Shown here: piece by piece, positions 566 through 53,402 of the stretch | How the letters are laid out: each line of letters begins with the position of its first letter | Position numbering within the stretch: position 1 is the stretch's first letter | NCBI GenBank assembly: GCA_030704615.1 | Contig: CM060734.1 | Span: forward strand, 58,528,001-58,592,000 | Reading direction: 5' to 3' | Length of the DNA: 64,000 bases | DNA from: Takakia lepidozioides | Lineage: Eukaryota > Plantae > Bryophyta | Notes under the pieces: generated by a model | Seen by the model: the letters and a program-made list of their open reading frames with translations, nothing else | Told to the model about the DNA's origin: nothing | Database searches by the model: none | Translations under genes and position numbers: made by a program

Positions 566-3500
566 TCACCAGTAATCCCCACAAGAGCAACTTCCACCTT
601 GGAAGTGGTGAAAGCGGTTCGAATCCCGTACAATAACTGCTCGTCCCACTATCTTTGATATGAACTTGGTGGCAGTGTGGCAGTCACCACACACCCGAAG
701 GTTCTTGATCACGCGGATAGGTGTCCCAGGGGGTGTGCTGATGAGCCCAAAAGCAATGGCCAGCTTCTCACCATGGTGGCCAAGAGACAACTCCTTTTGC
801 TCCTCCTCCACATCATGCAATACAAAGCGTGTGTCAGGCACGTACCCTGCCTCCTTCATCTGACCAAACAACCTCTCCAGCTCAGTATGAATTTCTTCAG
901 TTTGCGGATGTGATCTGTCTTCTACAGCGAATTCATGCACCTTGTTGTTCAGCTCAATGCAGCTACGTCCGCGTTCCTTTCTGACACCTCTTTCCTCCAT
1001 CATTTCTCTCACCTTTGCTTTATCAGCCCACCTGCCAGCTGCAGCGTACATATTCGATAGCGTCACATATGATGGAGCATGCTGTGGATCTGCCTTGAGA
1101 CTGCATTTTGCAGCACGTTCTGCTAGCTCCATATTGCCATGAGCTCTGCAAGCACCAAGCAGGGCCCGCCAGACCCTGGCATCTGGTTCAATTGGCATTT
1201 GATTGATAAAGTCCTGTGCCTCATCCAGTCGCCCTGCACGCCCAAGAAGATCCACCATGCAGCCAAAATGCTCTACTGTAGGGGTGACACCATGATCTCG
1301 ACTCATGGAATCAAAGTACAGGCGGCCTTCATTGACTAGGCCTCCGTAGCTGCATGCAGAGAGAAGAGACATAAAGGTTATACTGTCTGGCTTCAAGCCT
1401 TCCTGTTGCATTTGCTCATAGATTTCAAAAGCCTCATCAGCATGCCCATGCTGGGCATATCCTGCGATCATGGCATTCCATGAGACAACATTTCTTTCAG
1501 CCATTTGTTTGAACACTTGATACGCATCCAGTAGGCTCCCACATTTAGCATACATGTCAAGAAGGGTAGTCTTCAAGTTAATACACCAGCCAATTCCAGC
1601 CTTGATGATGTCAGCATGGACTTGTTTGCCCTTTTCCAGAGCCCCTAGACTGGCACATGCATTGAGCACGCATATGAACGTAACCCTGTCAGGTATCACC
1701 CCTTCCAATTGCATTTCCTTGTACATTCTGAAAGCGTCTTCACCATGCCCATGCTGGACATAGCCTGCAATCATGGCATTCCATGAGACCACATTTCTTT
1801 CAGCCATTTTGTCAAACAATTGACGGGCATCTGTTAGGCTCCCACATTTGGCATACATATCAACAAGTGTGGTCTCCAAATTAATATATGACCCTATTCC
1901 AGCCTTGAGGATGTCAGCATGGACCCACTTTCCCTTTTCCAAGGCTCCTAGGCTGGCACATGCGTTGAGAACACAAATGAATGTGACCAAATCCGGCGTT
2001 GCACCTTCCCGTAGCATATGCTCATACATTTTCAAAGCCTCTTCACCATTCCCATGCTGGGCATAGCCTGCAATCATGGCGTTCCAAGAGACCACATCTC
2101 GTTCAGCCATTTGGTCAAAGACTTTACGCGCATCATTTATGCTCCCACATTTCGCATACATGTCAACAAGGGTTGTCTTCAAGTTAAGACATGATGAGAT
2201 TCCAGCTTTGAGGATGTCTGCATGAACACGCTTGCCCTTTTCCAGGTGTGCTAAGCTCGCACATGCTTTGAGAATGCAAATGAATGTGGACCCATTGGCC
2301 ACCACGCCTTCTTGTTGCATCCGCTCATACATTTTGAGAGCATCTTCACCATGCCCATGCTGGGCATAGCCTGTGATCATGGCGTTCCATGAGACCACAT
2401 CTCGTTCAATCATCTGGTCAAATATTTGTCGTGCATCCTTTACGCGCCCGCATTTGGCATATCCTGCGATCATAGCAGTCCATGAGACCACATTTCGTTT
2501 CACCATTTTATTGAACACTTGATGCGCATCCTTCATGCTCCCACATTTGGCATACATGTCAACAAGAGTAGTCTCCAAAGTAATATCAGACGCAATTCCA
2601 GTTTTGATGATTTCAGCATGGACCTGCTGCCCCCTTTCCAGGGCCCCTAGCCTGGCGCATGTATTGAGAACACAAGTGAAAGTGACCCTATCGGGCATCA
2701 CTCCTTCCCCTTGCATTTGCTCGTAGATCTCAAACGCCTTCTTAGCCTGCCCATTTTTGGCATATCCCTTGATCATCATAGTCCATGTAAATATGTCTCG
2801 TTCAGGCATTTTGTCAAACACTTCACGTGCATCCGACACGCTCCCACACTTGCTATACATGTTGATGAGGGTATTATCTAGAAAGATGCTTGGCTTGAAT
2901 CCACTTTGGATCAAGTGCGCATGCACCTGCTTTCCTTCTGCTAGGGCTTTCATGTTGATGCACCTCTCTAATAGACAGACATAAGTGTTGGATTCTGCCT
3001 GAAAGCCAGGTTGGTTCAGAATGTGCAGTGCCTCCTTCAGTCGTTTGTCCCTACAGAGTGACCTCACATCCTCATGAGTCCCACATGACCTATTGTTGAC
3101 TCCCTCTCTTTGTTTCCTTTCAAAACCAGGGGCGAGTGTGGAGGTGCTGCCACTCTGATGTCCAACAAACAATTGTGCATGACTCAACCATGGCATCCTG
3201 CAACTCAAAACACCTATAATTAAATTTTACTCAATGATATTGCAGTGGTCTGAGATACTTGAATGAAGATATCTCGGCGTGGAGACAAAAATTGAGAGAT
3301 TAACAGGGTTCAAATCTACTCCAGTCTATAATACTTCAAGACTGTAAGTCAAGCAATTCTAGTTGAAACCATCAACTCATCATCAACAAAACCATACCTA
3401 TTGCACTGTCGGCTTGGAGCACCCTGGTGCAAATTGACATAAGAAACAGCACCAGATGGTACTCGACCTTGCCCCATAGCAGCTAGCCCTCCATCCACCC

Positions 3501-5086
3501 AAGGTGGGTTAACCGAACTCTCAATCCATAAGACCTCATTTGTGCCATTATGTTTGGAGTCTGGCGATTTTGGAAATTTCTGTGAAAACCACAAATATAA
3601 GCATAAGCTTCAACAATCGGCTTGTATGGATTGGGCTAGAACACCAAAGCTCCAAAACATGTTTCATATAACAGGTATCCTTGAATGACCTTGAGCATAC
3701 TACTGTCAGTCCCTGTTAACCAGCAAGAACAACCTACTAATACCCACAATGAGACTCTTCAGGACAAAGAGCAACATGGATCTTAGCAACTGTAGATACA
3801 CCCAGTGACTGGAGATCCATAAAGTATCTTCATGTCAGTTTCTGTCCTGACTCACTTCCTAGATGAAGATAGTCTCACCTTCTCATTCCTGTTGTCAAAC
3901 GACCAAGAACGATCTAGGAAGGGCTCCTGCCAGATATGTTCTCTGCTCATTGTTTCATCTGCATACAAAATCTGCAAGAACATGATTGTTGCTAGCTTTC
4001 ACTTCTCTCAATCACTATTGACAGCTGGTGTAGCTTTGAAAAACATTCTCCAAGTCATGCACACACTGAGAAACATACAAACATACCAGAAATTACAGAT
4101 GTTGCAGAAGGTACTGTAGGGGCTTGCAGTGAACAGGCCCACCCTTACAAGCCAGGCTGATTGGGTGATACTCACAATCCTCCACCACCCTTGTCTGATC
4201 AGAATCTGAGAGTCCGCCATAATCTGCCATCCCACCAAGACCTGGCCACCTGTCTTGAAACTTCAATGGAGGTCCAATGTCCACAAGAGAAGGACCAGAC
4301 GTGGATATGTATCCACCATCGGATTGTATTCGACTTTGAGTCATGGCAGCTCGCTCTCCTTTCACCCGAGGGGGCTTCAACCAAGTCTCATACCAAAGGA
4401 CCTCCTTTGTGTCCGTAAGTCTTAGGTCTGCTGATATGGCGACAATCTGTGAAAACCACGAGTGTGAAGCTGAGTAGCCAAAGCTTCAACCACAGCCTCA
4501 AATAGACCAGGCGAAAAAAAAAATCTCTGCAGGCAAACAAAAGGCCACAACGGACCAGCTTCCATGCTACTGTGGAAAGACAGACAGGACGAACTACCGC
4601 AGGTATGACAGACAAAGACTGTCATAATTAAAACAATGGTTCAAAACTTCTAGTCAGACACTAAATTCAATGGGGCCAGTCTAGACAACCTCACCTTATG
4701 AAATCTGTTATCGCACCAGTGCCAATGATGTGACTTAAACTGAGCACCTGCAAGAAAATGCCACCAAACCATAAGATTTTTACGATCTCTTGATTATATG
4801 ATTCTTATGAGAAAAAACGGCTCTCTCTCTATCCCTCTGGACCTCTTAAGTGTGCGTAATAACTTTCTTCTTCTTCTTCTTCTTCTTCTCAGTCATATGT
4901 CACGGTGGTTGAACTTCTTCAACCAACATGGTGTACTTTTGCTGTCAGTTTGGAGCCTGGATGGCTCCTGCGGCACATGAGAACCCAGAAAATTGCAAGG
5001 ACTTTCGTGCTCGTACCCTCTTTCGGTATCCCTGAAGCCTTGGAAGGTCCCATGACCACCAATCGCACGGATCTCTGGCCTCGCAT
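566..5086 (-). CDS. PDF-motif (OSB-like) + PLS-PPR + E + DYW protein, paralog 1 (about 1095 aa, 6 exons)
   Basis: Proposed exons: 5086-5017, 4747-4695, 4446-4176, 3958-3879, 3579-3398, 3197-566. All introns are GT-AG with matching phases (1,0,1,0,2). The last exon encodes 18 PLS motifs, E1/E2 and DYW (HGEKLA...CGDCH...GDYW). Upstream exons give a degenerate PDF-1 (HWCDNRFHK|IVAISADLRLTDTKEVLWYE) and PDF-2 (IWQEPFLDRSWSFDNRNEK|KFPKSPDSKHNGTNEVLWIE). The start codon is uncertain; an upstream ATG at 5249 is out of frame. Confidence 0.85.
4865..4890. repeat. (TTC)n microsatellite
   Basis: About 8 TTC units in the first proposed intron of paralog 1. Confidence 0.9.
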
Positions 5087-5505
5087 TGTCAAGAGGTTTG
5101 TCCTGCTCCTTGACTGTAAGAAGAAATCAAGACCTTCACGATGGCGTCTTCCCGGAGCAGATTGCTACCATCCTCGTCTCCGTGTGCGAGCGAGCATCAC
5201 ACCTGAGAACTTCGAGCCTTTTCCACAACCGACTGCCGCACCTCCTCATGAATCGGGAGATCTAATCATGCATCAGTCGAGAGAGGAACATTCTTTCGTA
5301 TCCTAAACGAGTTTCTCGGCTCCTTTGCTTGCCTTCAACAGTAGGCCACTGTGGCAATTTTTTCTGAACGAAGATCATTGATAAATGGACGATGAGGCAA
5401 CATTTCGTTTTGATGACCTTAAAACTTTCCTCATGTCAACCCATTTCTCATTGACGCAACTTGAGGATCAAGTGCTCTGGTTCTGAATGGAACGATCTTC
5501 TCACG
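5087..5505. promoter_or_regulatory. Probable bidirectional promoter region between head-to-head paralogs 1 and 2
   Basis: The divergent first exons lie only about 260-420 bp apart. No specific cis-element was identified. Confidence 0.45.
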
Positions 5506-8500
5506 ATGGGCAACATGATGACCCCACACAAACGATTGAGCACATGCAACGATCGGGTCTGGAAGAGGACAGAAGATCGCAGGTGGGTTCCTCCCTCACG
5601 CAGGCATAGGGACGGTTGCAGCTTGGCAAGCAAGGGCCTGTTGTTCTCATTACCTCATTGGGCCGGATGCCTCACATCATGCACGACATTAAGGTGTCAG
5701 GCTGTAGAGCTCAAAGACACATCCACCTTGCCAGCGCAGGGCACAAGGTCCTTGCAAGTGATGGCTATGGCAGTTCCCACGCCTTCAGGGAAGCTCAAAG
5801 AAGGTATAGGCAAGCGACCCTTTTCTGTATCGTTAAATCTCCAATTCTTCGTCACATATAGACCCAGAAAGTGCAACCATTTGGTGGCAAGAAGTGCTGT
5901 ATAGGAACGTTGGCATGACCAACAGCCTTCCATCACCTCCTTCACTGTCGTATACATTCTTTGAGATACTTCTGTTTCTTTCTAAATGATAAATTCACCT
6001 GTGGAAGTCCTACCTCGCTCAATAAACGAGTAGTTTTTCGGTGGAAGAACTGATTTAACCTATATTGTCATCCAAAGAACTTAATTTCCATGGTGAAATT
6101 TACTGGACTATGCTTTCAGTTGCCTGGATTTACCATGCTGATCTCTCAGTCATAGTTCTTGTTGGATCGGTGGGTTATAAATCCATGAGTGGCTGGAATT
6201 TGGTTTTCTCGACGTAGTAGTAGCCTGTTGCTTGTAGGATGCATAGACATACTTGCCTGGTCTATACAAGTCTGTGGCTGAAGCTATGTCTGCTCAGCTG
6301 CACACTCGTGGTTTTCACAGAAAAGTTCAAGATCATCAGACTTCAGGCATAAGTTCACAAGGGAGGTCCTGTGGATTGAGACTCTGTCAATTCTCCCTTG
6401 TTGAAAGCAGAGCTAGCAACAATGACACAAAGTCGAACACAATTTGGTGTTGGGTTCTATTTGTGGTCTGATTATCAGAGCTCCATTGAAGATTCGAGTT
6501 GGGAGTCCAGATGCTGATGGGATGACATGTTATGGTCGAAGCAAAGAGTCTGATCAAACAAGGGCTGTGGCGGAGTGTGAGTTTGACCCAATTGGTCTGG
6601 CTTGGAGGGTGCCCTGTTCCCACAAGTTCAGTATCTCCTGCAAAATCTGTAATTTCTGCTTTTTTTTACGAGTGTATATAGATTGGAGCATGAGGTGGAG
6701 AAAGAGCCCGGAGTAACCTGCAGAAATGTTTCCAAATCTACACTAGCATTCCTCCAGAGAATCGAACCTGGAAACAGCTCTTATCTACTTGCGGTGTCTG
6801 GCATGCAGGTGTAAGACATCACGCTGAACAACTCTGGCATGAGTTCTTCTCAGATCTGTCACAGTTGTGGAACAACAGGTCAGAGAAGGTGAGAGGCATT
6901 AGGATGTAAGTCAAAGAAAGGTTTAGAGTGAACCTGGGTAAGGATGCTTTGTGGACTGGGACAGCATCTTTAGCTGCTAGTTTGAGTGACAAAATTTCTT
7001 TGTTCTTGAGGAGTTGCAATTATTGTCTGTACCGGTAGCATGTTCTGGCTTGTTAGCAGGATGGGAAAGTAGGCTGTTCAAAGTGGTTCCCTGTTACGTG
7101 CAAGAAGCTTGCGTGGTTGTTACCTGGTCTGGACAGGATTGTTATTAAACCTATTGCATATTGTCATTCTCACAGAAATATCCAAGATCACCAGATTTCA
7201 GACGTAAGAGCAATAAGAGGGTCCTGTGGATGGAGAGTTGGTTGAACTGCCATCCTATGAAAGGAGAGCTAGCTGTCATGATACATAGTCGATCACAATC
7301 TGGTAATGTTTCTGAAAGAGGGCCAAGACAGGGATTCAACAAGAAGTCTTCTGGACCTCATTGGGATGTAAGATCATTGTGTAAGGTGGGACGACTGAAA
7401 GAGGCGCTGCACATTTTGGACCAGACTGGCATACTAGCAGACTCCAGTACTTATGTCTGTCTCTTGCAGAGATGCATCATCATGAAAGCCCTTGCAGAGG
7501 GTAAGCAGGTGCATGCCCACATTATCCAAAATGGATTCAAGCCAAACATCTTTCTAGACAACACCCTAATCAACATGTATAGCAAGTGTGGGAGTGTGGT
7601 GGATGCACGCAAAGTGTTTGATAAAATGTCTGAACGAGACATGTTTACATGGAGTATGATGATTGGCGGATATGCCAAACATGGGCATGCTGAGAAGGCT
7701 TTTGAAATCTATGAACAAATGCAACGGGAAGGTGCGACGCCTGACAGGGTCATATTCACTTGTGTTCTGAATGTGTGTGCCAGGCTAGGAGTACTGGAAA
7801 AGGGCCAGCAGATCCATGCTGACATTGTCAAAACAGGAATTGTGCCAGATATTACCTTGGAGTCTAGCCTTGTTGACATGTATGCCAAATGTGGGAGCAT
7901 AAAAGATGCACGTCAAGTGTTTGAGAAAATGCCCGAACAAAATGTGGTGTCGTGGACAGCCATGATTGGAGGATATGTCAAATGCGGGAATATAAAGGAT
8001 GCGAAACTAGTGTTTGAAAAAATGTTGAAACGAGATGTTGTCTCATGGAACGCCATGATTGGAGGCTATGCTCAGCATGGGAATGGTGAAGAGGCTTTCA
8101 AAATGTACAAGCAAATGCAGAGGGAAGGCATGAGACCCAATGGGGTGACCTTCATTAGCGTTCTCAATGCTTGTGCCATCCTAGGAGATCTGGAAAAGGG
8201 TAAGCAGGTCCACGCTGACATCCTTAAAGCTGGAATCGTATCGTCTATTAATTTGAAGACAACCCTTGTGGACATGTACGCCAAATGTGGAAGCCTAAAG
8301 GATGCACGGCAAGTGTTTGATGAAATGGCTGAACAAAATGTTGTCTCATGGAATGCCATGATTGCAGGATATGCCCAACATGGGCATGGTGAAGAGGCTA
8401 TCCAAATGTATGATCGAATGCAACGAGAAGGAGTGATGCCTGACAGTGTCACATTCATCTGTGTTCTCAATGCATGTGCCAGCATAGGAGCTCTGGATAA

Positions 8501-9866
8501 AGGCAAACTGGTCCATTCTGACATTGTCAAAGCTGCAACTGTTTTATGCGTTAACTTGAAGACCACCCTTGTGGACATGTATTCCAAATGTGGGAGCGTG
8601 AAGGATGCACGTGAGGTGTTTGACAATATGGCTGAACGAGATGTCGTCTCATGGAATGCCATGATTGCAGGCTATGCTCAGCATGGGCATGGTGAAGAGG
8701 CTTTTCAAGTCTATGAGAGAATGCAACAGAAAGGAGTGATGCCCGACAGTGTCACATTCATGTGTGTTCTCAACGCATGTGCCAGCATAGGAGCCCTGGA
8801 TAAAGGCAAACTGGTCCATTTTGACATTGTCAAAGCTGCAACTGCTTCATGCGTTAACTTGAAGACCACTCTTGTTGACATGTATTCCAAATGTGGGAGC
8901 TTGAAGGACGCACGTGAGGTGTTTGACAACATGGCTGAACGAGATGCGGTCTCATGGAACGCCATGATTGCAGGCTATGCTCAGCATGGGCATGGTGAAG
9001 AGGCTTTTCGAGTCTATGAGAAAATGCAACAGAAAGGCTTGAAACCAGACAGTAGCACCTTCATCTCTCTTCTCTTTGCTTGTAGTCATATGGGTCTAGT
9101 GGATGAAGGCCGTCAGTTATTTGACTCCATGAGTATTCATGGCCTCACACCTACAGTGGAGCATTTTGGCTGCATGGTGGATCTTCTTGGCCGTGCAGGG
9201 CAACTGGATGAGGCGAGGGACCTTATTACCCAAATGCCAATGGATCCAGATGCTACGGTGTGGCGTGCCTTGCTTGGTGCCTGCAGAATTCATGGCGATC
9301 TGAAGCTAGCAGAACATGCTGCAAAATGTATTCTCATGTTGGATCCAGAGCAATCTGCAGCTTATGTGCTGCTATCAAACATCTATGCTGTGGCTGGCAG
9401 GTGGGATGACAAAGAGAAGGTCAGACAGATGATGAAGGATAGAGGTATTAGAAAGGAGCCTGGGCGCAGTTGGATTGAGGTGAACAACCAGGTGCATGAA
9501 TTTGTTGTAGAAGACAAATTGCATCCACAAATCAAGGAGATCCATGCTAAGTTGGAGAGATTGTCTGGGCAGATGAAGGAGGCTGGATATGTGCCTGACA
9601 AACGTTTTGCATTGCATGATGTAGAGGAGGAGCAAAAGGAAATTTCTCTTGGCTACCACAGTGAGAAGCTTGCCATTGCTTTTGGGATCATCAATACGCC
9701 CCCTGGGACACATATTTGCATCATGAAGAACCTTCGAGTATGCGGAGATTGTCATACCGGCACCAAGTTCATCTCAAAGATTGTTGGTCGAACAGTCATC
9801 TTGCGGGATGCCAGCCGCTTTCACCACTTCCAAGATGGGTTTTGCTCTTGTGGGGATTACTGGTGA
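5506..9866 (+). CDS. PDF-motif (OSB-like) + PLS-PPR + E + DYW protein, paralog 2 (about 1022 aa)
   Basis: Proposed exons: 5506-5803 (phase 1), 6809-6888 ([19 protein letters not shown], phase 1 to 0) and 7176-9866 ([11 protein letters not shown]...VLWME, 18 PLS motifs, PG box [25 protein letters not shown]). The model skips a disabled PDF-1 exon at 6321-6576. Confidence 0.88.
6321..6576 (+). pseudogene. Disabled PDF-1 exon inside paralog 2
   Basis: Acceptor ttttcacag and donor gtgagt are retained. It begins [20 protein letters not shown], then has two compensating frameshifts with three in-frame stops. Homologous to paralog 1 exon 4446-4176. Confidence 0.75.
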
Positions 9867-12014: not shown

Positions 12015-12656
12015 CTACTCCTTGATGGGCACAACATCACCAAGAACCATAGCTTCTAGTGCTTCCTCTGTTGCTTCCACTGCTGCAGCGATTGTGGGAC
12101 TTGGCTGGGTCTCAGGCTGGTCAACAGCGGCCTCAGCCGCAGGCTGGGGATCGAATGGACTACTGATGGGATGCACACTCGGGGGAGCTGAGTGAGGACG
12201 ACGAGGATGACACAAAGCTGCAGATCGACAGCCATGGTGCTTCATGTGCTTCTTATGCAAATGCCGTCTTCCATGGAAAAAGATGGGCGGAGGTGAGAAA
12301 GCCCTCACAATTGGTGCCATCGGAGTGGAAGGTCCACAATCTTTAGGACCATCAAGCGAACTGGGTGGGCAGGGCATGGCACCACGAGCGGAGCCATGTT
12401 CAAGGCCATGACCGTGGCCATGGTGGTGGCGATGTCTGTGGTGGCCACCGTGCTTCACACGGTGGCCATGGTGATGATGAAAGCCGTGGCCTCGCAAGCC
12501 ACCATACCGGCCAGACCCATCTAAGGAAAACACCGTAGCATCCACCCCGTCGACACCAGAAGCCATGGCGAGCCTCTCTGAAGCCTCAGTACCCAGCGAG
12601 AAGAAGAGAAAACGCTTGTGAGATTTAGCCATCTCTCTAAACGACCCACCTCCCAT
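12015..12656 (-). CDS. His/Gly-rich, Pro-rich hypothetical protein, copy 1
   Basis: Open frame from ATG 12656 (or 12566) with HGFHHHHGHRVKHGGHHRHRHHHGHGHG and an acidic C-terminus. A TATA-like stretch lies near 12797. No recognised domain. Confidence 0.5.
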   Translation of the reverse strand: MGGGSFREMAKSHKRFLFFSLGTEASERLAMASGVDGVDATVFSLDGSGRYGGLRGHGFHHHHGHRVKHGGHHRHRHHHGHGHGLEHGSARGAMPCPPSSLDGPKDCGPSTPMAPIVRAFSPPPIFFHGRRHLHKKHMKHHGCRSAALCHPRRPHSAPPSVHPISSPFDPQPAAEAAVDQPETQPSPTIAAAVEATEEALEAMVLGDVVPIKE

Positions 12657-13388
12657 CTTTCTACGTCCGACACAATCTCCGAGCCTCACTCCAAGGTGAT
12701 CGATAAGAAGATCTGTAGGCAGATGACGGCAAGCTCTCGCTATAAACGAGCAATGGCTTGGAGTGCAAGGCAAGCCATCCTCTGGTCGGTGCTACGTATA
12801 TATAAAGAAATACACACCTCTAGGTCGGTACCTACTGTACCAAACACAAGTATGTATTATAAATTAGCTTGCGTATGATCTACGCTCGCGAGTTCTAATT
12901 TTGTCTTCCTATTTCACCGAAGATGATCTGGCAATCTAATGTATGTCTTTGAACAAAGCACACACACAAATCAATTGGTAACTTGAGCTCATGCAGACAT
13001 CCCTTGATACATCTGCATGAATCTTCCATTCTCCTAAACTCTCTAGATTGCTGGAAGAACTTACTACAAAATTATCATTTGGACGTGAGCAGATGTCCCT
13101 GATCACATTATGACTATGAACCAGTTTCAATTTTGAGACAGGTTTGGTTTGATGGATGTTTGAATAAAGTAAGTACTCTTCATTGAACTAAGAGGTGAAT
13201 CAGTCCCGAATCAGTACAAGGTCATTTGATAATCAGCGAAGAAATGTCGCACTTCGATTGCGCCACCCTCTGTCGCCTGGGCGAGATCAAGTGCTAGAAC
13301 ATACATTAGCCCTGATTGTAGTGTTCTTACTGCGGTTCGTTTTGTGTTTTTGGTGTGTGGTGGAGCAACATCGAAGATCTTCTAAAGG

Positions 13389-14677: not shown

Positions 14678-16194
14678 TGCAATTGTCACCTGTAGGTCGA
14701 AATCACTGTCATTTGCTGACATTTCGAGTACATCTAGACTGGTTCCAATCTCTCTTGGATAGATACCTGCAATGGACAAAGCTCAAACAAGCAATATTCC
14801 CTTCGCAATTCTGCTCTGATCCTTCCTCACACGTAAATACTTCTTTTGAGTCTTCTGGTGCTAACAGGGATAGAGCAGCCAGTTTGCATTAGTAATGGTT
14901 TGTCTCAGTGTAGGACCTGCATGACCAGCTTTTGCATCACCTTACATGGACCTTACATGGCAAGCTCCTGCGGCATTTAACCCATTCATATCAAAGCCAC
15001 TTAGATTGAATGACTGCCGAATTTGGAACGCGGGCGAATTAGAATTTAGAACAGCACCAAGTTGCAAAAACTTCTGTTATCAGACTTTTAAAGGGGATCT
15101 ACTTTACTTCCAAGCTCCACAAAGGCAAGACTCAATATTGTTGGCCATTGCATAGGGCATTTAAAATTATGTGCAGATAGGGAACACCCAAGCTGAACAA
15201 GAAACTCCTGGAAAATGTACTGCAGCCTAAATGGGTAAAGGCATGCGTTTAAGTTGAGCAGTAGCACACACATTGGTTCCAGCCGTCTGTCCAGGCGTTC
15301 TGCACTTGAATTTGCAAACCGTGCCCAAGTATCTCCTTCATCACTGTGCATGATTCTGCCTTTGTTGCACTCTGCTTGATTACACTCCTGCTTCCCAGCA
15401 CTAGAGGGATCTGCACCTTATGCTGTTGCAAGCATTCACTGCAAATCGGAGAGGCATCTTCCTTCAATCAAATCCCAAAGTCCTTGGTGAAGCACTGAAG
15501 CCAACTAGATATTTTCAGAAGGTTTCCCATGACTTCAATACTCACATTTGAACTATAATCATCAACACGGTTGTCATTAAGGTCCTGACTATTGCACTTC
15601 CGGACACCAGTCATTTCCTTCCAGGTTACAATGCTTCAATAACGACAACCACCCTCATATTTGAAAAACACACTTGTCTTCCATCTTGCATGTTGGTGGC
15701 GTCACCACTAATCTCCACAAGAGCAAAACCCATCTTGAGATGAACTTGGTGCCGGTATGACATGATGCGAATATGTGTCCCAGGGGGCGTATTGATGATC
15801 CCAAAAGCAATGGCAAGCTTCTCACTGTGGTAGCCAAGAGAAATTTCCTTTTGCTCCTCCTCTACATCATGCAATGCAAAACGTTTGTCAGGCACATATC
15901 CAGCCTCCTTCATCTGCCCAGACAATCTCTCCAACTTAGCATGGATCTCCTTGATTTGTGGATGCAATTTGTCTTCTACAACAAATTCATGCACCTGGTT
16001 GTTCACCTCAATCCAACTGCGCCCAGGCTCCTTTCTAACACCTCTATCCTTCATCATCTGTCTGACCTTCTCTTTGTCATCCCACCTGCCAGCCACAGCA
16101 TAGATGTTTGATAGCAGCACATAAGCTGCAGATTGCTCTGGATCCAACATGAGAATACATTTTGCAGCACGTTCTGCTAGCTTCAGATCGCCAT
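14678..16194 (-). pseudogene. Inverted copy of the paralog 2 E-DYW region and downstream flank
   Basis: Reverse complement of about 9290-10965. The DYW segment (about 15700-16194) has deletions removing most of KNLRVCGDC and RDASRFHHF. Confidence 0.92.
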
Positions 16195-17205
16195 TCATTA
16201 CAGAGAGACCACACAAGACAATTGTACAAGAGAGGAACGGTTCCGCCAGGGGGACGTGAAAAACAAAAGGAAAGCAAATCATAGTCCTTGTGATTAACTC
16301 AAGCCTGTCGCGTGTCACATCACACTTTTGCGGAAGGGAGTGGGTAAGAGAGAGCTGAAAGGCAAGATGAAGCCATGCCAGCTACGTCTGCCCGCAGTGT
16401 AGACATGGCTTGTACTCAGTTGCATGTTGTCTAACTGACGCTGAAACATCGAAAAATCCCCACTGCAGACGGTGCATCCTTAGGCCGAAAGCTACCAAGG
16501 CGGGCGGTTCCTGCCTGGAGGGGCCAATCGAGAAAGCAAATCCGATCTGAAGTGACAATCAATCACTTGTAAAAGCTCTGCAGATTTTCCTGCCTATGAC
16601 CACCCTTGTGAAGTCGATAACTATTTGCATCACTCCCTTCGATGACAAATCAAAAGCGCTCAGAATGTTTCTATTGTAGCTCTGGAGATAAGGCATACGA
16701 TCAGCTCTGTATTCACATCGACATCCATTCAAATGATCATGGAAGCACAGCTGTACAATCAAGTCCCGCTTTATTCATTGTAATAGAGGAGTCCAGTTCT
16801 AGAATTCAGCTCAACTGAAAACTAAGCTTCACATGGGATTGTAGGAGCATACAGATAATGTCAAGTATGTCCACAAATGCCCCACATGAAGGATCACGTA
16901 GTTAACGCAGGTTCAGCCAAGGCTCTAGGCAAGCAAACAGGCCTTGCTCTATGTACTATAAAGCGACAGAAAAAGCCATCGAAGCTCTTAACGCACACGA
17001 TACCAGCTCCAAGTGACTCTTGACAACCAAAGCTCATTGTACCAGGCTACGAAGCAACTTATACTTGTTGCTGTTAGTATCTAATGTACGCTGCTCAACA
17101 GGTTGAGCACTCGCGTCTAAAAAGTAAGAGGTAAAGACGGACTTTCGGTCTGAGGACCCCTGAGGACTCGTGTCCATGTGACGGGGGAGAAGTAGAGTTG
17201 CCGGG

Positions 17206-17847
17206 CTATTCCTTGATGGGCACAACATCACCAAGAACCATAGCTTCTAGTGCTTCCTCTGTTGCTTCCACTGCTGCAGCGATTGTGGGACTTGGCTGGG
17301 TCTCAGGCTGGTCAACAGCGGCCTCAGCCGCAGGCTGGGGATCGAATGGACTACTGATGGGATGCACACTCGGGGGAGCTGAGTGAGGACGACGAGGATG
17401 ACACAAAGCTGCAGATCGACAGCGATGGTGCTTCATGTGCTTCTTATGCAAATGCCGTCTTCCATGGAAAAAGATGGGCGGAGGTGAGAAAGCCCTCACA
17501 ATTGGTGCCATCGGAGTGGAAGGTCCACAATCTTTAGGACCATCAAGCGAACTGGGTGGGCAGGGCATGGCACCACGAGCGGAGCCATGTTCACGGCCAT
17601 GACCGTGGCCATGGTGGTGGCGATGTCTGTGGTGGCCACCGTGCTTCACACGGTGGCCAAGGTGATGATGAAAGCCGTGGCCTCGCAAGCCACCATGCCG
17701 GCCAGACCCATCTAAGGAAAACACCGTAGCATCCACCCCGTCGACACCAGAAGCCATGGCGAGCCTCTCTGAAGCCTCAGTACCCAGCGAGAAGAAGAGA
17801 AAACGCTTGTGAGATTTAGCCATCTCTCTAAACGACCCACCTCCCAT
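17206..17847 (-). CDS. His/Gly-rich hypothetical protein, copy 2
   Basis: Duplicate of 12015-12656 with four amino-acid differences and an intact frame. Confidence 0.5.
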   Translation of the reverse strand: MGGGSFREMAKSHKRFLFFSLGTEASERLAMASGVDGVDATVFSLDGSGRHGGLRGHGFHHHLGHRVKHGGHHRHRHHHGHGHGREHGSARGAMPCPPSSLDGPKDCGPSTPMAPIVRAFSPPPIFFHGRRHLHKKHMKHHRCRSAALCHPRRPHSAPPSVHPISSPFDPQPAAEAAVDQPETQPSPTIAAAVEATEEALEAMVLGDVVPIKE

Positions 17848-17998
17848 CTTTCTACGTCCGACACAATCTCCAAGCCTCACTCCAAGGTGATCGATAAGAA
17901 GATCTGTAGGCAGATGACGGCAAGCTCTCGCTATAAACGAGCAATGGCTTGGAGTGCAAGGCAAGCCATCCTCTGGTCGGTGGTGCTTACGTATATAC

Positions 17999-19126: not shown

Positions 19127-22100
19127 TCACCTTATTTTTGTCTCCCAGCTGAGTTCATAGGTACCTTCGATGAGCTCAAACTTTCTACTTCTGCGATTAT
19201 TGTCCGGGCCAGCCCACGGGAAAACTGTGACTCCCCACGCAGCTGTCATTACATCATAAAGACCGACGTCAGGATCCCAAAGAGCAGGCTTGAAGGCAAT
19301 GAATCTGTCTCCACTCACCACCTCATAATCCTGGGAGGAAGACTGCTTGTGTGTTTCTGTTCTAAACAATCTCTTGAAAAGATGGTCAGGCATCAGGCCA
19401 TTCGGCACTGGGCCATAGGAGCCTGTGGGGGTGCCGTCTGGATTGAGGAGAACTTCAACAACCAGAATTTGATCGCATTTAGAATTTCTTCCGGATGTAG
19501 TACGAGTGATGGCGAACACTTTATCTGCACCGGCTCTCACTACCTTGGGAGGTTCCACAGGCGCTGTGATCTGAGACGCTCCCAAAACAGAAAAATCGAA
19601 GATCAGTCTTTGGCGCCTACTCTTACTTACATTGAAGTATATGACAGCTGGGTTTTTCTGATCTCTAAGGGCATAGGGTCGCGGACGGATTCTTAGTCCT
19701 CCCATGTATACTCCATAGTTGATGACGGCACATCCTGCGCGCCCGCCCATGGCTTTGTATGCGTTTCTAGCATACTGGAGTGTGTCAAAATGGGTCCAAT
19801 TCCGCTCCTTTGAAGAATACACAGCCAAAACCATCTCATCTATGGGTCGCCTTGGGTGTACTGCTTGAATACGTTCATACGTGGATATGGCAACTGGATC
19901 GTGGTTATTTAGAACATGTCCCAGAACAATGAGACGGTACCTCGAGCGTGATGCATCTGCAAAACTGAAGCATGCGACCTTGTCTTCGAGTATCTTATTA
20001 GGAATGGGGGGCAATATTGCGAACTCTTTGGTGAGAACGTTGGCAACGATCACCACTGATTGTCCCCTTACGGAGTCGAATTCTGGTCGAGACCAATGCG
20101 CTGGGACAGTACCAGTGCTAGGTTGCAAAAACTGTGTCCCGCCATCCATTACGAAAAGGCCATTGCTTGCAGCGATGACACGATCCACAAAGCCTGGAAT
20201 GAACGCTAGACTGGGCAAGAATACCCAATCGTAATATCGGCCAGCTTCCCGACGCGTCTGGGACAGATCATGATCGAATCCGTACATCAAGTGTCCTGGC
20301 CGGTTCTTCACGAGTATGACTGGAAAATATCGCTGGTACTTTCTTAGCGCAGGATCCGCAAATGAGGAGGCTGTCCAAATTGGAACTCTGGCATCGACAT
20401 GAAATCTCTCTAAGGCTCGATCCCTCTCTACTGTTAGGTTTGGGAGGTCCATGTTGATCCAGGCGGTGTCCAATTTCTCTACTGGAATCCTAGTCATAAC
20501 AGCACTTCGTACGCTGGCAGGCAGGTTATTACCCCACCCAATGCCTGCATCATGAGAAGAAATATAATCGACAAGTGGTAGGGCTGCTGCTAAAACACTT
20601 GCATCCTGCTCAGGACTAGGATCCGTTGAAGCCAAAGAATCCGAAGACTCGGTTTCGGTTGCAGGCTCAGGTGTTTTTTCTCGAAGTGGATTCATGACTT
20701 GTGGGTTGGAAGGATCCGCGACGTTGTCAGTTCGCTGACGTTTAGAAGGATTAGTGTCGGCTGGTGGCGACCCTGGTGGTTCCGGAGAGGCTCTAGATCG
20801 AGAGCCGGGTGGACTGTTGATATATTCAGGAACGGTGCTTTCTACACACGTTACACAAGCTGTGGTATCAGGCTCAGGGCCACCTTCGCAAGAGTAGACC
20901 GGTGGAGATACTAAGGGAAGTTGCTGAGTGGGATCTGTCATATATGCCCTCAGCGGTACCGTCTCTATGTTTTGGTTTACAGGAACCTGCGAAAGAGGCT
21001 GGTCCGTCTCCAAGGTGTCTACCAATTCATCTAAAGTGACGGCTGCAGAGGTGAGCTGCATCCACACCCTATCCATCACGTCACTTGCAATTGACGCTGG
21101 TGTGGAGGCCGCGTCCGTCATCACTGTATCTATTATGGCATTTACTCTCCTGGATGGAGAAGATCGAGTGGGCATCGAAGTGTCGACGTACGTTGCAGAG
21201 GTTGACGCTGCTGCATGATGAGACGGGTCCATCATCGTGGTGTCTATCCGATTTAAGTCATTTCCAGTTATCGGTTGAGCAGGTACTGCGCTTGACGTGG
21301 TGGCAGTGGTGGCCCTTACAGCCACCTCCTGCTCATCGGGATCAACCAACACCGTTTCGATCCATGCTACGTCTTCAGCTGACTGTAGCTCTGCGCTGCA
21401 TCCACACGTGTTTGGAGGCAACAATGCCTGCTCCACGTCGTCACCTTCCGTAAGCAAGGCCACGAAACCTTGTGCTGGTAACTGATTATCTGCGGAAGCT
21501 TGTGCCCCATCACCACTGTTGAGTTCACGTGGTGATGGAGAGGCTCTGGGAGCTGACTGGGCTGTTGGAAATCTGGACAAAGCACCACTGCTATCTACTT
21601 CAATTTCAAGTAAGTGGTCGGCGACTCCATCCTGATCAAGACGACGATCCCATTCTGGAAGGGCGATGGTATCAGTCCCTGGGCTACGTGGTGTACGAGG
21701 CTCCTCCTCAAGTGCAACAGTCTCATTATCATCCCTAGACGTTTGCAACCCTTGGTGACTTGATGAGACCGAAGCGGTACTACCTTGCCTCTGTAAAAGT
21801 GGACGATTTGGACTTGGCGGTGGCCGAGAATTCTCATCAGCGTGGTCATCGTCTTGTAGGTTAAAGGCATTAAGCACGCCGTTGTAGAAATCTTCCAGTT
21901 CCGGAACAGGGGCCCTTGTAACATGAGCTCCACTTACGTAACTCTGAAGGGGCATGTCCTGAAACGGGTCAGCCCTACTTAGATGACCAAGAAGATCCAG
22001 GTCAGCTCTACTGAAGCCAAGCTGCTCAGCTGGGTCCAACGGCACTGGCCATGGCACAGTGTCTGGCTGGGGCAAAACACAAGCAACCATCTGATTACAG

Positions 22101-22213
22101 GCATCATTGTATGCATTAACCTCGGCACTTACTTCAGCAAGTTCCTCGGCAATTTGCTTGCGAGTCACCGAACGCGAGGTACTATCAGTACTTCCAGACG
22201 ATCCCGAGGCCAT
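19127..22213 (-). CDS. Intronless F-box-like protein (1028 aa) with a long disordered acidic N-terminus and a C-terminal F-box-associated/kelch-like region
   Basis: Degenerate F-box WGNNLPASVRSAVMTRIPVEKL, then the plant F-box-associated signatures WVFLPSLAFIP, VIAASNGLFV, VIVANVLTKEFAILPPIP and VYSSKERNW. Confidence 0.7.
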   Translation of the reverse strand: MASGSSGSTDSTSRSVTRKQIAEELAEVSAEVNAYNDACNQMVACVLPQPDTVPWPVPLDPAEQLGFSRADLDLLGHLSRADPFQDMPLQSYVSGAHVTRAPVPELEDFYNGVLNAFNLQDDDHADENSRPPPSPNRPLLQRQGSTASVSSSHQGLQTSRDDNETVALEEEPRTPRSPGTDTIALPEWDRRLDQDGVADHLLEIEVDSSGALSRFPTAQSAPRASPSPRELNSGDGAQASADNQLPAQGFVALLTEGDDVEQALLPPNTCGCSAELQSAEDVAWIETVLVDPDEQEVAVRATTATTSSAVPAQPITGNDLNRIDTTMMDPSHHAAASTSATYVDTSMPTRSSPSRRVNAIIDTVMTDAASTPASIASDVMDRVWMQLTSAAVTLDELVDTLETDQPLSQVPVNQNIETVPLRAYMTDPTQQLPLVSPPVYSCEGGPEPDTTACVTCVESTVPEYINSPPGSRSRASPEPPGSPPADTNPSKRQRTDNVADPSNPQVMNPLREKTPEPATETESSDSLASTDPSPEQDASVLAAALPLVDYISSHDAGIGWGNNLPASVRSAVMTRIPVEKLDTAWINMDLPNLTVERDRALERFHVDARVPIWTASSFADPALRKYQRYFPVILVKNRPGHLMYGFDHDLSQTRREAGRYYDWVFLPSLAFIPGFVDRVIAASNGLFVMDGGTQFLQPSTGTVPAHWSRPEFDSVRGQSVVIVANVLTKEFAILPPIPNKILEDKVACFSFADASRSRYRLIVLGHVLNNHDPVAISTYERIQAVHPRRPIDEMVLAVYSSKERNWTHFDTLQYARNAYKAMGGRAGCAVINYGVYMGGLRIRPRPYALRDQKNPAVIYFNVSKSRRQRLIFDFSVLGASQITAPVEPPKVVRAGADKVFAITRTTSGRNSKCDQILVVEVLLNPDGTPTGSYGPVPNGLMPDHLFKRLFRTETHKQSSSQDYEVVSGDRFIAFKPALWDPDVGLYDVMTAAWGVTVFPWAGPDNNRRSRKFELIEGTYELSWETKIR

Positions 22214-24216: not shown

Positions 24217-27200
24217 TCACCAGTAATCCCCACAAGAGCAAGCCCCATCTTGGAAGTGGTGAAAGCGGCTGGCATCCCGCAAAATAACTGCTCGCCCAAC
24301 AATCCTTGAGATGAACTTGGTGGCTGTGTGGCAATCACCACACACCCGAAGGTTCTTGATCACGCGGATAGGCAAGCCAGGGGGCGTGCTGATGAGCCCA
24401 TAAGCAATGGCCAGCTTCTCACTGTGGTGGCAAAGAGACAATTCCTTTTTCTCCTCCTCCACATCACGCAATACAAAGCGTGTGTCAGGCACATATCCCG
24501 CCTCCTTCATCTTCCCAGACAATCTATTGAGCTCAGCATGGATTTCCTCAATTTGTGGATGCAATGTGTCTTTTACAAGAAATTCGTGCACATGGTTGTT
24601 CACCTCAATGCAGCTGCGCCCCGGCTCCTTTTTGACACCTCTCTCCCCCATTAAGTGTCTCACCTTTGCTTTATCCTCCCACCTTCCAGCTGCAGCATAG
24701 ATGTTCGATAGCAGCACATGAGCTGCATCATGCTGTGGATCAAACCCGAGGATGCACTTTGTAGCACGTTCTGCAAGCTCCACATTGCCATGAGTTCTGC
24801 AAGCACCAAGCAAGGCCACCCACACACCAGCAACTGCCTCGACTGGAATTTTGTTAATGAAATCCTCTGCCTCCTCCAGTTTCCCTGCACGGCCAAGAAG
24901 ATCGACCATGCAGCCAAAATGCTTGACTGTGGGAGTAAGACCATAATCTCGACTCATGGAATGGAAGTGATTGCGGCCTTCAATCACTAGGCCGGCATGA
25001 CTACATGCAGAGAGGAGAGATATGAAGGTGATACCATCTGGCTTCAACCCTTCCTTTTGCATTTCCTTAAACATTTGGAAGGCCTCCCTAGCACCCCCAT
25101 GCTGGGCATAGCCTGCAATCATGGCATTGAATGAGATCACATCTCGTTTCCTCATTTTGTCGAACACTTGACGTGCATCCTGTACACTCCCGCATTTTGC
25201 ATACATGTCAACAAGGCTTGTATATATGTCAACAAGGGTGGTCTTTAAATTAACACATGATACAATCCCAGTTTTGAGCATGTCAGCATGGACTAGCTTG
25301 CCCTTTTCCAGGGCACCAAGGCTGGCACACGCATTGAGAACACAAATGAATGTGGCCCCATTGGGTGTCAATCCGTTCTGTTTCATTTGTTCATACAATT
25401 TCACAGCCTCTGCACCACGCCCGTGCTGAGCATACCCTGTGATCATTGCATTCCATGAGACCACACTCCGTTCAGCCATACTGTCAAACAGTTCACGAGC
25501 ATCAGCTAAGCTCCCACATTTGGCATATCCTGCAATCATGGCAGTCCAGGAGACCACATTTCGTTTCGACATTAGGTTGAACACATGACGCGCATCCTTT
25601 ATGCTCCCACATTTAGCATACATATCAACAAGGGCAGTCTCCAAAGTAATGTCTGGCACAATTCCAGTTTTGATGATATCAGCATGCACACGCTGGCCCT
25701 TTTCAAGGGTTCCTAGCCTACCGCACGCAACCAGAACACAAGTGAACGTTACACTGTCAGGCATCACCCCTTGCCTTTGCATTTGCTCATAGATTTCGTA
25801 AGCCTTCTCAGCTTTCCCATGCTTAGCATATCCCCCAATCATCATGCTCCAGGTAAAACTGTCTCGATTCGGCATTTTGTCAAACACTTGGCGTGCATCC
25901 GCCACACTCCCGCACTTGCTATACATGTTGATAAGGGTGTTGTCCAGAAAGATGTTTGGCTTGAAGCCACTTTGGATCATGTGGGCATGCACCTGCTTTC
26001 CCTCTGTTAGGGCTTTGAAGTTCATGCATCCATGCAAGAGACAGACATAAGGATCGGAGTCTATTGGAATCTCTAGTTGGGTCAAAATGTGCAGCGCGTC
26101 TTTCAGTCGTCCTTGCTTACACAGTGACCTGACATTCCCATCATTGTTTTCTTGCTCTTGGGTCCCATGCTGCACTTCATTATTAGACCGATCACCGGAT
26201 TGTGCTTGACCTTGTGTCATGGCAGCTAGCTCTGCTTTCACCCAAGCTGGGTTCAACCGACCCTCAATCCAAAGGACCTCCCTCGTGTACTTATGTCTGA
26301 AGTCTGGTGATGTTGGATATTTCTGTGAAACCACCAAGACACCATAGGTTTAACCACACCCCCACATAGACCCGGCTACAACCTCAAAAGCTCCTGAGCA
26401 CCTTTCACACCAAAAAAGGGGGGAGCAACCTTGAAAACCTACTTTCATGCCCTTGCAGCTTCTCTATAGCATGCTATAGATGGCCACAAATCTAAGATAC
26501 AGACCAGTCCACAAAGCATGCACATGCCAGCTCAGTCAAAAGCCCTCCTGTACTGAAGCTCCTATTAAAAGAAAATAGTCTCACCTTATCAGACCTGTTG
26601 TCCCACCACTGAGAAGGATCTGAAAAGAAATCCTTCCAGAGTTGTCCTCTGCTCATCACTCGACCTGCGCACCAGAAACTACAAGACCATAAAAACTATT
26701 GCCATAGTCTGATCGTCTCAGTGACATTGTGAATCGATTCGGGAAAACATTTCTGTAGGTTACCCTGGGCTACGCTCTGCCTCATGCACTCAGTGACATA
26801 CCAGAATTACAGATGTTGCAGAAGATACTGACGGGGCTTGTGGTGGACAGGGCCACTCTTCAAGCCAGGCTGATTTGAGTCATACTCACATTCCTCCACA
26901 GCCCTTGTTTGACAAGATTTTGTGCTTTGACTATAATCTGACATCCCACCAAAATTTGGACTTTGGTCTGGCAATGGATCTCCACTGGGAACACCAGAGT
27001 CAGAGCCATACTGTGATATCCATCCGCCATCAGATTGTTTTCTTCTTTGTGTCTTGTCAGCCAGGTCTTTCATCCAGCCAGGTCTGCGCCACTGCCAAGG
27101 CTCTGCCGAGACCTCCTCGTCTATACTCATTGCTTGGCCTGCATTCAGATACCAAAGATCTTTAGTGTACGTTCTACTGATATGGCTGAAGGACACTGCA

Positions 27201-27564
27201 GAGCCTGAACGACTCTGAAGCACAGTTTAGAGAAAGCCCACAAATTAGAAGAGAGAATCATGGCTCTACCTTTTCCTGAAGGCTTGGTAGTCGTCATAGC
27301 CACCACTAGAACGGATCTCGGGCCTGGCATTGCCGAGGTCGATGCCCCTTCGAGCTCCACGGCCTCACCCCATAATCTGCTTCGTGAAGTGAGGCACCAC
27401 CGCAGATGCGGTATAGAAGAAGACATGGAAGTTAGAGGAGTATCGGAGCACTCTGCCAGCAACTCCGTGTTTGCGTGTGTGAGACAAGGAACAACCCACC
27501 CGTAAGCTTCCATACTCTTCCAGGGATTGTAGAACCTCCTCAGTGGTCTCTGGCGATTGGTCAT
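24217..27564 (-). CDS. PDF-motif (OSB-like) + PLS-PPR + E + DYW protein, paralog 3 (about 909 aa, 4 exons)
   Basis: Proposed exons: 27564-27270, 27138-26890, 26664-26585, 26322-24217, with phases 1,1,0. The spliced product has the best PDF motif, [19 protein letters not shown]|[32 protein letters not shown], then 12 PLS motifs, E and DYW (HSEKLA, CGDCH, GDYW). Confidence 0.88.
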
Positions 27565-28191: not shown

Positions 28192-30087
<1,896 letters not shown>

Positions 30088-53337: not shown

Positions 53338-53402
53338 GTGGCTGTAGCTCAATGGAAAGCAATGAAAAGCTCTTGATCTGGGTTCAAATCCTAGCAGCCA
53401 CA
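53338..53402 (+). ncRNA. tRNA-His-like element without a normal anticodon arm, copy 1
   Basis: 7-bp acceptor stem GTGGCTG/CAGCCAC, A-box TAGCTCAATGG, T-arm CTGGG-TTCAAAT-CCTAG, upstream TATA and downstream oligo-T. Confidence 0.5.

Follow-up and report, generated by a model that had tools for sequence, protein, structure and literature searches.

In the moss Takakia lepidozioides, a gene on the minus strand of the stretch analysed in this study (64,000 nucleotides of contig CM060734.1, assembly GCA_030704615.1, positions 58,528,001 to 58,592,000, referred to as the window and numbered from its first letter) joins a PDF motif, the single-stranded DNA (ssDNA)-binding module of plant OSB proteins, to a PPR protein carrying the E motifs and the DYW cytidine deaminase of organellar RNA editors. 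A genuine PDF-PPR-DYW transcript is observed at this locus, which lies between positions 27564 and 24217 and is termed the focal gene, and we regard this conclusion as nearly certain. With a probability of about 60%, this transcribed gene belongs to a conserved family of organellar C-to-U editing factors found in seedless land plants, in which a presequence would be followed by at least one OSB-type PDF motif, a PPR array of the PLS class, the E motifs and the DYW deaminase.

Gene structure and transcripts

The motif is encoded in two parts. Its first half resides on an 80-nucleotide exon (26664-26585, minus strand), which follows a cag acceptor (26667-26665) and consists of two nucleotides completing a codon and 26 further codons, the last of them AAG, with the coding frame running from 26662, an in-frame ATG at 26656-26654 and the donor gtgaga from 26584. 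The adjoining GT..AG intron (26584-26323, minus strand; 262 nucleotides) is in phase 0 and splits the motif after the sequence DNRxxK, with the short exon ending in ..SQWWDNR..K and the large exon beginning with K.P.SPDFRHK...LW. The latter, the PPR exon (26322-24217, minus strand), opens with a full codon and stays open until the stop codon at 24219-24217, yielding a product of 701 residues, at whose start the second half of the motif (K.P.SPDFRHK...LW....P.WV; 26322-26224, minus strand) is defined by its profile scores.

Evidence for transcription comes from Logan contigs of two public runs from two studies (X1, 2017, P1; X2, 2021, P2), which contain about half of the locus's words. In contigs of both runs the interval 26323-26584 is skipped exactly, with 78 and 80 nucleotides on the shorter side of the join, and both borders of the 80-nucleotide exon are used. 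Since three further GT..AG intervals upstream are skipped as well, the contigs originate from spliced RNA, even if the nature of the runs as RNA is itself a guess. Their assignment to the focal gene rather than to a paralogue follows from an X2 contig spanning 25192-25337, which matches the focal copy without difference, including a 7-codon duplication that is private to it. The phase-0 splicing of the short exon to the PPR exon, which the initial annotation had read from the sequence and for which it had named RNA reads over 26585/26322 as a check, is thus borne out by the sequence and by the join present in contigs of X1 and X2. As a separate observation, an open reading frame with a ubiquitin-like start (28288-28521, plus strand) is arranged head-to-head with the focal gene, and one X2 contig extends 468 nucleotides past 27700 in its direction.

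Homology of the motif to the PDF of OSB proteins

The claim of the initial annotation that the focal motif is homologous to the OSB PDF holds, on the basis of profile scores, of an intron position common to both groups of genes and of the same predicted fold. In the profile comparison that had been suggested there, the two halves were scored separately, whole motifs were drawn only from database proteins and 2714 stop-to-stop pieces of the window served as background. With a PDF profile restricted to OSB proteins that bear an OB domain, the first half scores 34.1 bits at model positions 3-24 and the second half 34.3 bits at model positions 24-54, with independent E-values of about 2e-9 among the 2714 pieces, whereas the top piece outside this gene family reaches 6.7 bits. 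Both matches abut at the intron, the P-D-F signature residues are present and a second profile, derived from 120 members of the named OSB1/OSB2 family, assigns 28.3 and 44.1 bits to the two halves.

The same relationship emerges from the opposite direction. When 13 PPR-borne PDF motifs were combined into a profile (A1) and run against 1.84 billion representative proteins, 1224 proteins matched at E<=1e-3, 550 of them with E<=1e-10. Among the best 149 of these matches, 71 contain an OB/SSB-like region, with the PDF located C-terminal to it in 70 of the 71, nine are PPR proteins and the remainder are mostly short fragments. The SSB domain was confirmed by Pfam in five sampled OB-bearing matches, and a Rehmannia protein among the OB-bearing matches falls in the NCBI family named OSB1 (mitochondrial) or OSB2 (chloroplastic). 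In contrast to the 71 OSB-like matches, none of the nine PDF-PPR representatives was matched by the OB profile. A word-indexed protein search with residues 1-45 of the exon product gave no candidate, an outcome that carries no weight because OSB motifs have no exact 5-mers in common with the focal copy; a sequence-feature search of the ESM Atlas with residues 1-40 gave no usable match and a PDB sequence search with the second half gave chance matches only (E ~1). An origin of the motif by chance or as an artefact of gene prediction was rejected in light of the profile scores, the spliced contigs and the conservation across species. Three further proteins contain PDF matches: a 1160-residue angiosperm protein model from Kingdonia uniflora (P0121) with 13 matches, which may be an extreme PDF expansion, and two probably merged gene models, one from Coptis chinensis (P0166) with matches next to a kinesin motor and the other from Striga hermonthica (P0154) with matches in a protein annotated as interactor of constitutive active ROPs.

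A phase-0 intron directly after DNRxxK, as in the focal gene, is also found in a PDF-PPR gene of Ceratodon and in an OSB gene of Rehmannia; two Sphagnum-type gene models start exactly at this intra-motif exon boundary and all PDF units of the three related genes of the window are split at the same position. The equivalent location of the intron in PDF-PPR and OSB genes argues for common descent rather than convergence, and it suggests exon shuffling as the route by which the motif has spread. In a tree of 81 PDF motifs (57 columns, calculated with a quick method) no branch is starred, and the PPR-borne motifs cluster, with 4 label changes compared to 13.2 in shuffled data, a pattern compatible with one origin as well as with several.

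Based on an alignment of 81 sequences, AlphaFold2 predicts a confident mini-domain (predicted local distance difference test score, pLDDT, 93.4) composed of a helix, two strands and a second helix. In the ESM Atlas this model superimposes on a streptophyte SSB-bearing cluster with a template-modelling (TM) score of 0.90 (root-mean-square deviation 1.1 Å, 57 residues) and on three streptophyte PPR/DYW clusters (57-127 members) with TM 0.84-0.90. Searches with the model by Foldseek against the PDB and by VIA-align wide returned nothing above E 2.6 or Z 2.1, and by PDB sequence, Foldseek and VIA-align searches no solved structure resembles the PDF fold. Two phage (Uroviricota) clusters of hypothetical proteins with 187-199 residues superimpose on the PDF model with TM 0.67-0.77 over 55-57 residues, and a bacterial Rad52/22 cluster superimposes weakly (TM 0.48). 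These superpositions of predicted models may hint that the PDF fold arose in phage proteins that anneal or bind single strands.

The PPR-E-DYW part and its relation to known proteins

To judge from its sequence, the downstream exon encodes a complete PLS-E-DYW protein with all catalytic signatures, a claim of the initial annotation that is supported by Pfam matches to PPRs, to E1/E2 and to the full-length DYW model. The PLS-class PPR array (24793-26133, minus strand; approximately residues 64-510 of the exon product) is matched by PPR_2 (7e-79, seven stretches), PPR (8e-76, nine stretches) and PPR_1 (4e-60), and it harbours the private in-frame 7-codon duplication near 25198-25240. It is followed by the E motif (E1/E2; 24604-24792, minus strand; residues 511-573), which is matched over the full model length (PF20431, 1.7e-21), by a weak E+ match at residues 578-605 (18 bits vs a cut-off of 24) and by the DYW cytidine-deaminase domain, which together with the stop codon occupies 24217-24498 (minus strand). 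The latter matches PF14432 (6e-44, residues 609-701) over model positions 1-93 of 93, and its PG box (EPG), HSE, CGDCH and C-terminal CSCGDYW can be read in the translation. The upstream exon products of the locus show no Pfam match at all and none of its exon products contains an SSB/OB domain detectable by Pfam, in agreement with an earlier claim that no SSB-like OB domain is present. Since this domain is absent, the focal gene is not an OSB. Its PDF is located N-terminal to the PPR array.

The focal protein thus combines features of two systems. With OSB proteins it shares the 55-residue PDF motif scoring far above background, the phase-0 intron inside the motif, the predicted alpha-beta-alpha fold and the tandem motif repeats found in some members, whereas it differs in the absent SSB-like OB domain, in the location of the motif, which is N-terminal instead of C-terminal, and in the remainder of the protein, which is that of an RNA-editing factor. 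With editors of the PLS-class PPR-E-DYW (DYW:PG) type such as Physcomitrium PPR56 and PPR65 it shares the PLS array, E1/E2 and a DYW domain with PG box, HSE, CxxCH and terminal DYW, whereas the focal family carries in addition at least one PDF between presequence and first PPR. A nucleic-acid-binding accessory module on a PPR editing factor is also found in the RRM-PPR, MORF-PPR and RanBP2-Znf-PPR fusions of Archaeplastida (PMC13386178).

Distribution and previous descriptions

The architecture is conserved beyond Takakia. A search with the PPR exon provided 120 best homologues, in 18 of which a PDF match is located upstream of the PPR array; 16 of these 18 contain the whole contiguous motif (63-83 bits) and the models of the other two start at the exon border and retain the second half (39-42 bits). 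Proteins with PDF plus PPR(-DYW) are annotated in the lycophyte Diphasiastrum complanatum at many loci, with 11-13 isoforms of different length per locus, in the moss Ceratodon purpureus, in six Sphagnum species including Sphagnum fallax, in the liverwort Calypogeia fissa and in the fern Adiantum, and the motif is absent from all Ginkgo, Cryptomeria and Taxus homologues among the 120. In Ceratodon and Sphagnum, an arginine-rich, presequence-like N-terminus directly precedes the PDF. The proteome comparison envisaged in the initial annotation has recovered further PDF-PPR(-DYW) proteins.

As far as our literature searches reach, the PDF-PPR-DYW family is undescribed. Full-text searches found no paper that pairs DYW with PDF motif, PDF domain or the full OSB name, nor did they find the motif strings in a plant context, and the earlier statement that no description was known has so far stood. 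The Physcomitrium PPR review names RRM, LAGLIDADG, SMR, NYN, CBS and SAP as accessory domains of moss PPR proteins and has no entry for PDF (PMC9459714), and both OSB and PDF go unmentioned in a 2026 survey of editing-factor fusions across the kingdom (PMC13386178). A 2026 survey of OSB proteins required both OB and PDF domains and would therefore have left out such fusions (PMC13393729). Because there is no Pfam model of the PDF, domain-based surveys are blind to it, and experiments would equally miss the motif since N-termini are routinely trimmed in editing assays. To this family, our study adds RNA evidence, the common intron and the fold match.

Paralogues and neighbouring sequences

The window contains three paralogues, A, B and the focal copy C, which share 62-73% amino-acid identity in their PPR part. 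Paralogue A (566-5300, minus strand) is a PLS-E-DYW gene with two decayed PDF units, 63% identical to the focal PPR part. Its PDF halves are located at ~4721-4692/4446-4330 and 3944-3873/3579-3484 (minus strand), each unit being split at the same motif position, and its second unit scores 27.6 and 8.8 bits with the OB-only profile. Paralogue B (~6300-9866, plus strand), also a PLS-E-DYW gene with two decayed PDF units, is 62% identical to the focal copy and 73% to A, and its PDF pieces are found at 6321-6383 (a second half, then a stop), 6823-6888 and 7176-7238 (plus strand; 22.9, 15.9 and 16.1 bits). The PDF units of A and B have thus all decayed, with 8.8-27.6 bits per half, whereas the focal gene contains one well-kept unit and the remnant of an earlier one. 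A comparison of the paralogues at their 5' ends could not separate exon from intron, as the introns align at ~70% as well.

A near-identical fragment of the C-terminus of paralogue B (15626-16318, minus strand), ranging from the E motif to the middle of the DYW domain, lacks the CxxCH zinc-site stretch and loses the frame after ..THIRIM; by its appearance it is a truncated pseudogene copy of recent origin. Two almost identical His/Pro-rich open reading frames of 252 residues (12015-12773 and 17206-17964, both minus strand) are located ~5.2 kb apart on either side of the DYW fragment, an arrangement that points to a segmental duplication of recent date. Further features of the window are an uninterrupted open reading frame of 1028 residues (19127-22213, minus strand), whose N-terminal half is of low complexity (Ser/Pro/Thr-rich) and whose C-terminal half is globular-looking, and a tRNA gene (53338-53402, plus strand; Rfam RF00005, 43.9 bits).

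The 5' end and the integrity of the focal copy

The candidate first coding exon (27564-27270, minus strand) starts with ATG 27564, comprises 98 codons plus one nucleotide, encodes an arginine-rich, presequence-like N-terminus and has a 3' border that is used in contigs. It is followed by an upstream exon (27138-26802, minus strand) whose alternative 3' ends at 26802 and 27012 are defined by contig joins, and which contains a decayed remnant of an earlier PDF-plus-linker unit, homologous to the linker of paralogue A. The observed joins connect 27270 to 27138 and 26802 to 26664 (both in X1 and X2) and 27012 to 26664 (in X2). The full gene model starting from ATG 27564, which was implied in the initial annotation, was not upheld: its join between 27270 and 27138 is present in the contigs, and both observed joins into 26664 lose the frame of this ATG.

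Several observations weigh against the focal gene being a working editing factor with a functional PDF. From ATG 27564, the 27012 form shifts the frame and the 26802 form meets a TAA at 26809-26807, and neither observed splice form places the presequence-like exon in frame with the PDF. In these forms the PDF-PPR-DYW frame is located behind a long upstream reading frame and is devoid of a presequence, with its first ATG at 27030 (27012 form) or 26656 (26802 form). The decay of the PDFs in paralogues A and B implies that the motif is not under uniform constraint in the genome. That the PDF binds RNA cannot be taken for granted, since recombinant OSB1 and OSB2 are reported to prefer ssDNA over double-stranded DNA or RNA (PMC4166229, citing Zaegel 2006), and the motif cannot be required for catalysis because moss editors truncated up to their first PPR retain editing activity in E. 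coli (PMC10482289).

These properties of the 5' end raise the possibility, which we consider doubtful, that the focal copy, although transcribed, has ceased to function as a gene, having undergone 5' decay with loss of the first PDF unit and displacement of splice donors. Its mRNA with the long upstream reading frame would then provide little or no imported PDF-PPR-DYW protein, while the architecture of the family would still be real. Such decay would account for the break of the ATG 27564 frame by both upstream joins and for a first PDF unit that persists only as a remnant, and it would be in line with the 7-codon duplication within one PPR and the truncated DYW fragment nearby (15626-16318). 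Conversely, the 26 + 701 codons over PDF, PPR, E and DYW stay open with all catalytic residues kept, and no other PDF of the window is as well preserved as the focal one, even though the PPR part is only ~62% identical to the paralogues. Moreover, a frame-keeping GTGAGT at 26889, conserved in A and B, is used by no X1 or X2 contig, but since Logan contigs lose rare isoforms and the Diphasiastrum loci show a multitude of annotated isoforms, a productive form making use of this donor may exist. On balance, we see roughly even chances that the focal copy yields an imported protein. As an observation on the same region, the segment that separates the GTGAGT, which is not used, from the GTATGT donor, which is used (26802-26889, minus strand), has a counterpart in paralogue A (4081-4170); both encode the same terminal peptide (..QYLLQHL, stop) with mostly synonymous differences, and the upstream reading frame may encode a separate short protein.

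Function of the PDF motif

In the reading of the focal gene as an editing factor, and by analogy with other PLS-DYW editors, the PPR array would select the RNA site and the DYW domain would deaminate the cytidine. The N-terminal PDF would bind single-stranded nucleic acids independent of sequence on the 5' side of the PPR footprint, and its likeliest role would be to anchor the editor at ssDNA of transcribing nucleoids or at nascent RNA, thus permitting an early encounter with the target. It would probably act as an accessory for recruitment or affinity rather than in catalysis, and for such an accessory role in single-strand binding or tethering the odds appear about equal. The initial annotation had put forward three possible roles, namely tethering to nucleoids or R-loops, action as a single-strand chaperone and deamination of organellar ssDNA, all of which are guesses. 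The PDF motif of OSB1 is reported to be sufficient for ssDNA binding (PMC6963530), an activity that is reported only for Arabidopsis OSB1 and OSB2 (PMC6963530, PMC4166229), and the ssDNA preference of both proteins favours tethering to DNA over a role as RNA chaperone and is silent on DNA deamination. The more specific proposal that PDF-bearing DYW editors are tethered via this motif to ssDNA of transcribing or replicating organelle nucleoids is speculative and, in our estimate, rather unlikely to be correct.

Two other roles of the motif would require a different view of the protein. Instead of binding nucleic acids, the PDF could mediate protein-protein interactions or oligomerization and recruit an OSB, other nucleoid proteins or a second editor. 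OSB2 was reported to be a tetramer (PMC6963530), and the PDF is predicted with confidence to fold into a compact alpha-beta-alpha unit with many exposed aromatics, both points in favour of such a role. However, binding to ssDNA, for which the motif alone suffices in OSB1, is its sole reported function (PMC6963530), and we find the interaction role improbable. The PDF could, alternatively, steer the DYW deaminase to single-stranded organellar DNA, in which case the protein would edit or mutate DNA and not RNA. The only feature in line with this idea is that one reading frame encodes both an ssDNA-binding module and a cytidine deaminase, and the idea conflicts with a PPR array, E motifs and DYW domain of the ordinary RNA-editing type, with the location of the PDF at the opposite end of the protein from the deaminase and with the age and conservation of the family, a poor fit with a DNA mutator; it thus appears highly implausible.

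Implications

PPR-DYW editors are at the core of RNA editing in plant organelles and are being engineered as programmable base editors, and OSB proteins protect organelle genomes from ectopic recombination. The natural fusion of the nucleic-acid-binding module of the latter with editors is conserved in mosses, a liverwort, a lycophyte and a fern and is unmentioned in the literature searched. It offers a testable handle on where editing takes place, be it at the nucleoid and perhaps during transcription, on whether the PDF binds RNA besides ssDNA, and on how the motif has spread. If the proposed tethering to nucleoids were true, seedless plants would edit their organellar RNA in physical connection with transcription, and OSBs and editors would compete or cooperate on the same ssDNA, thus linking the control of organelle genome recombination to RNA editing.

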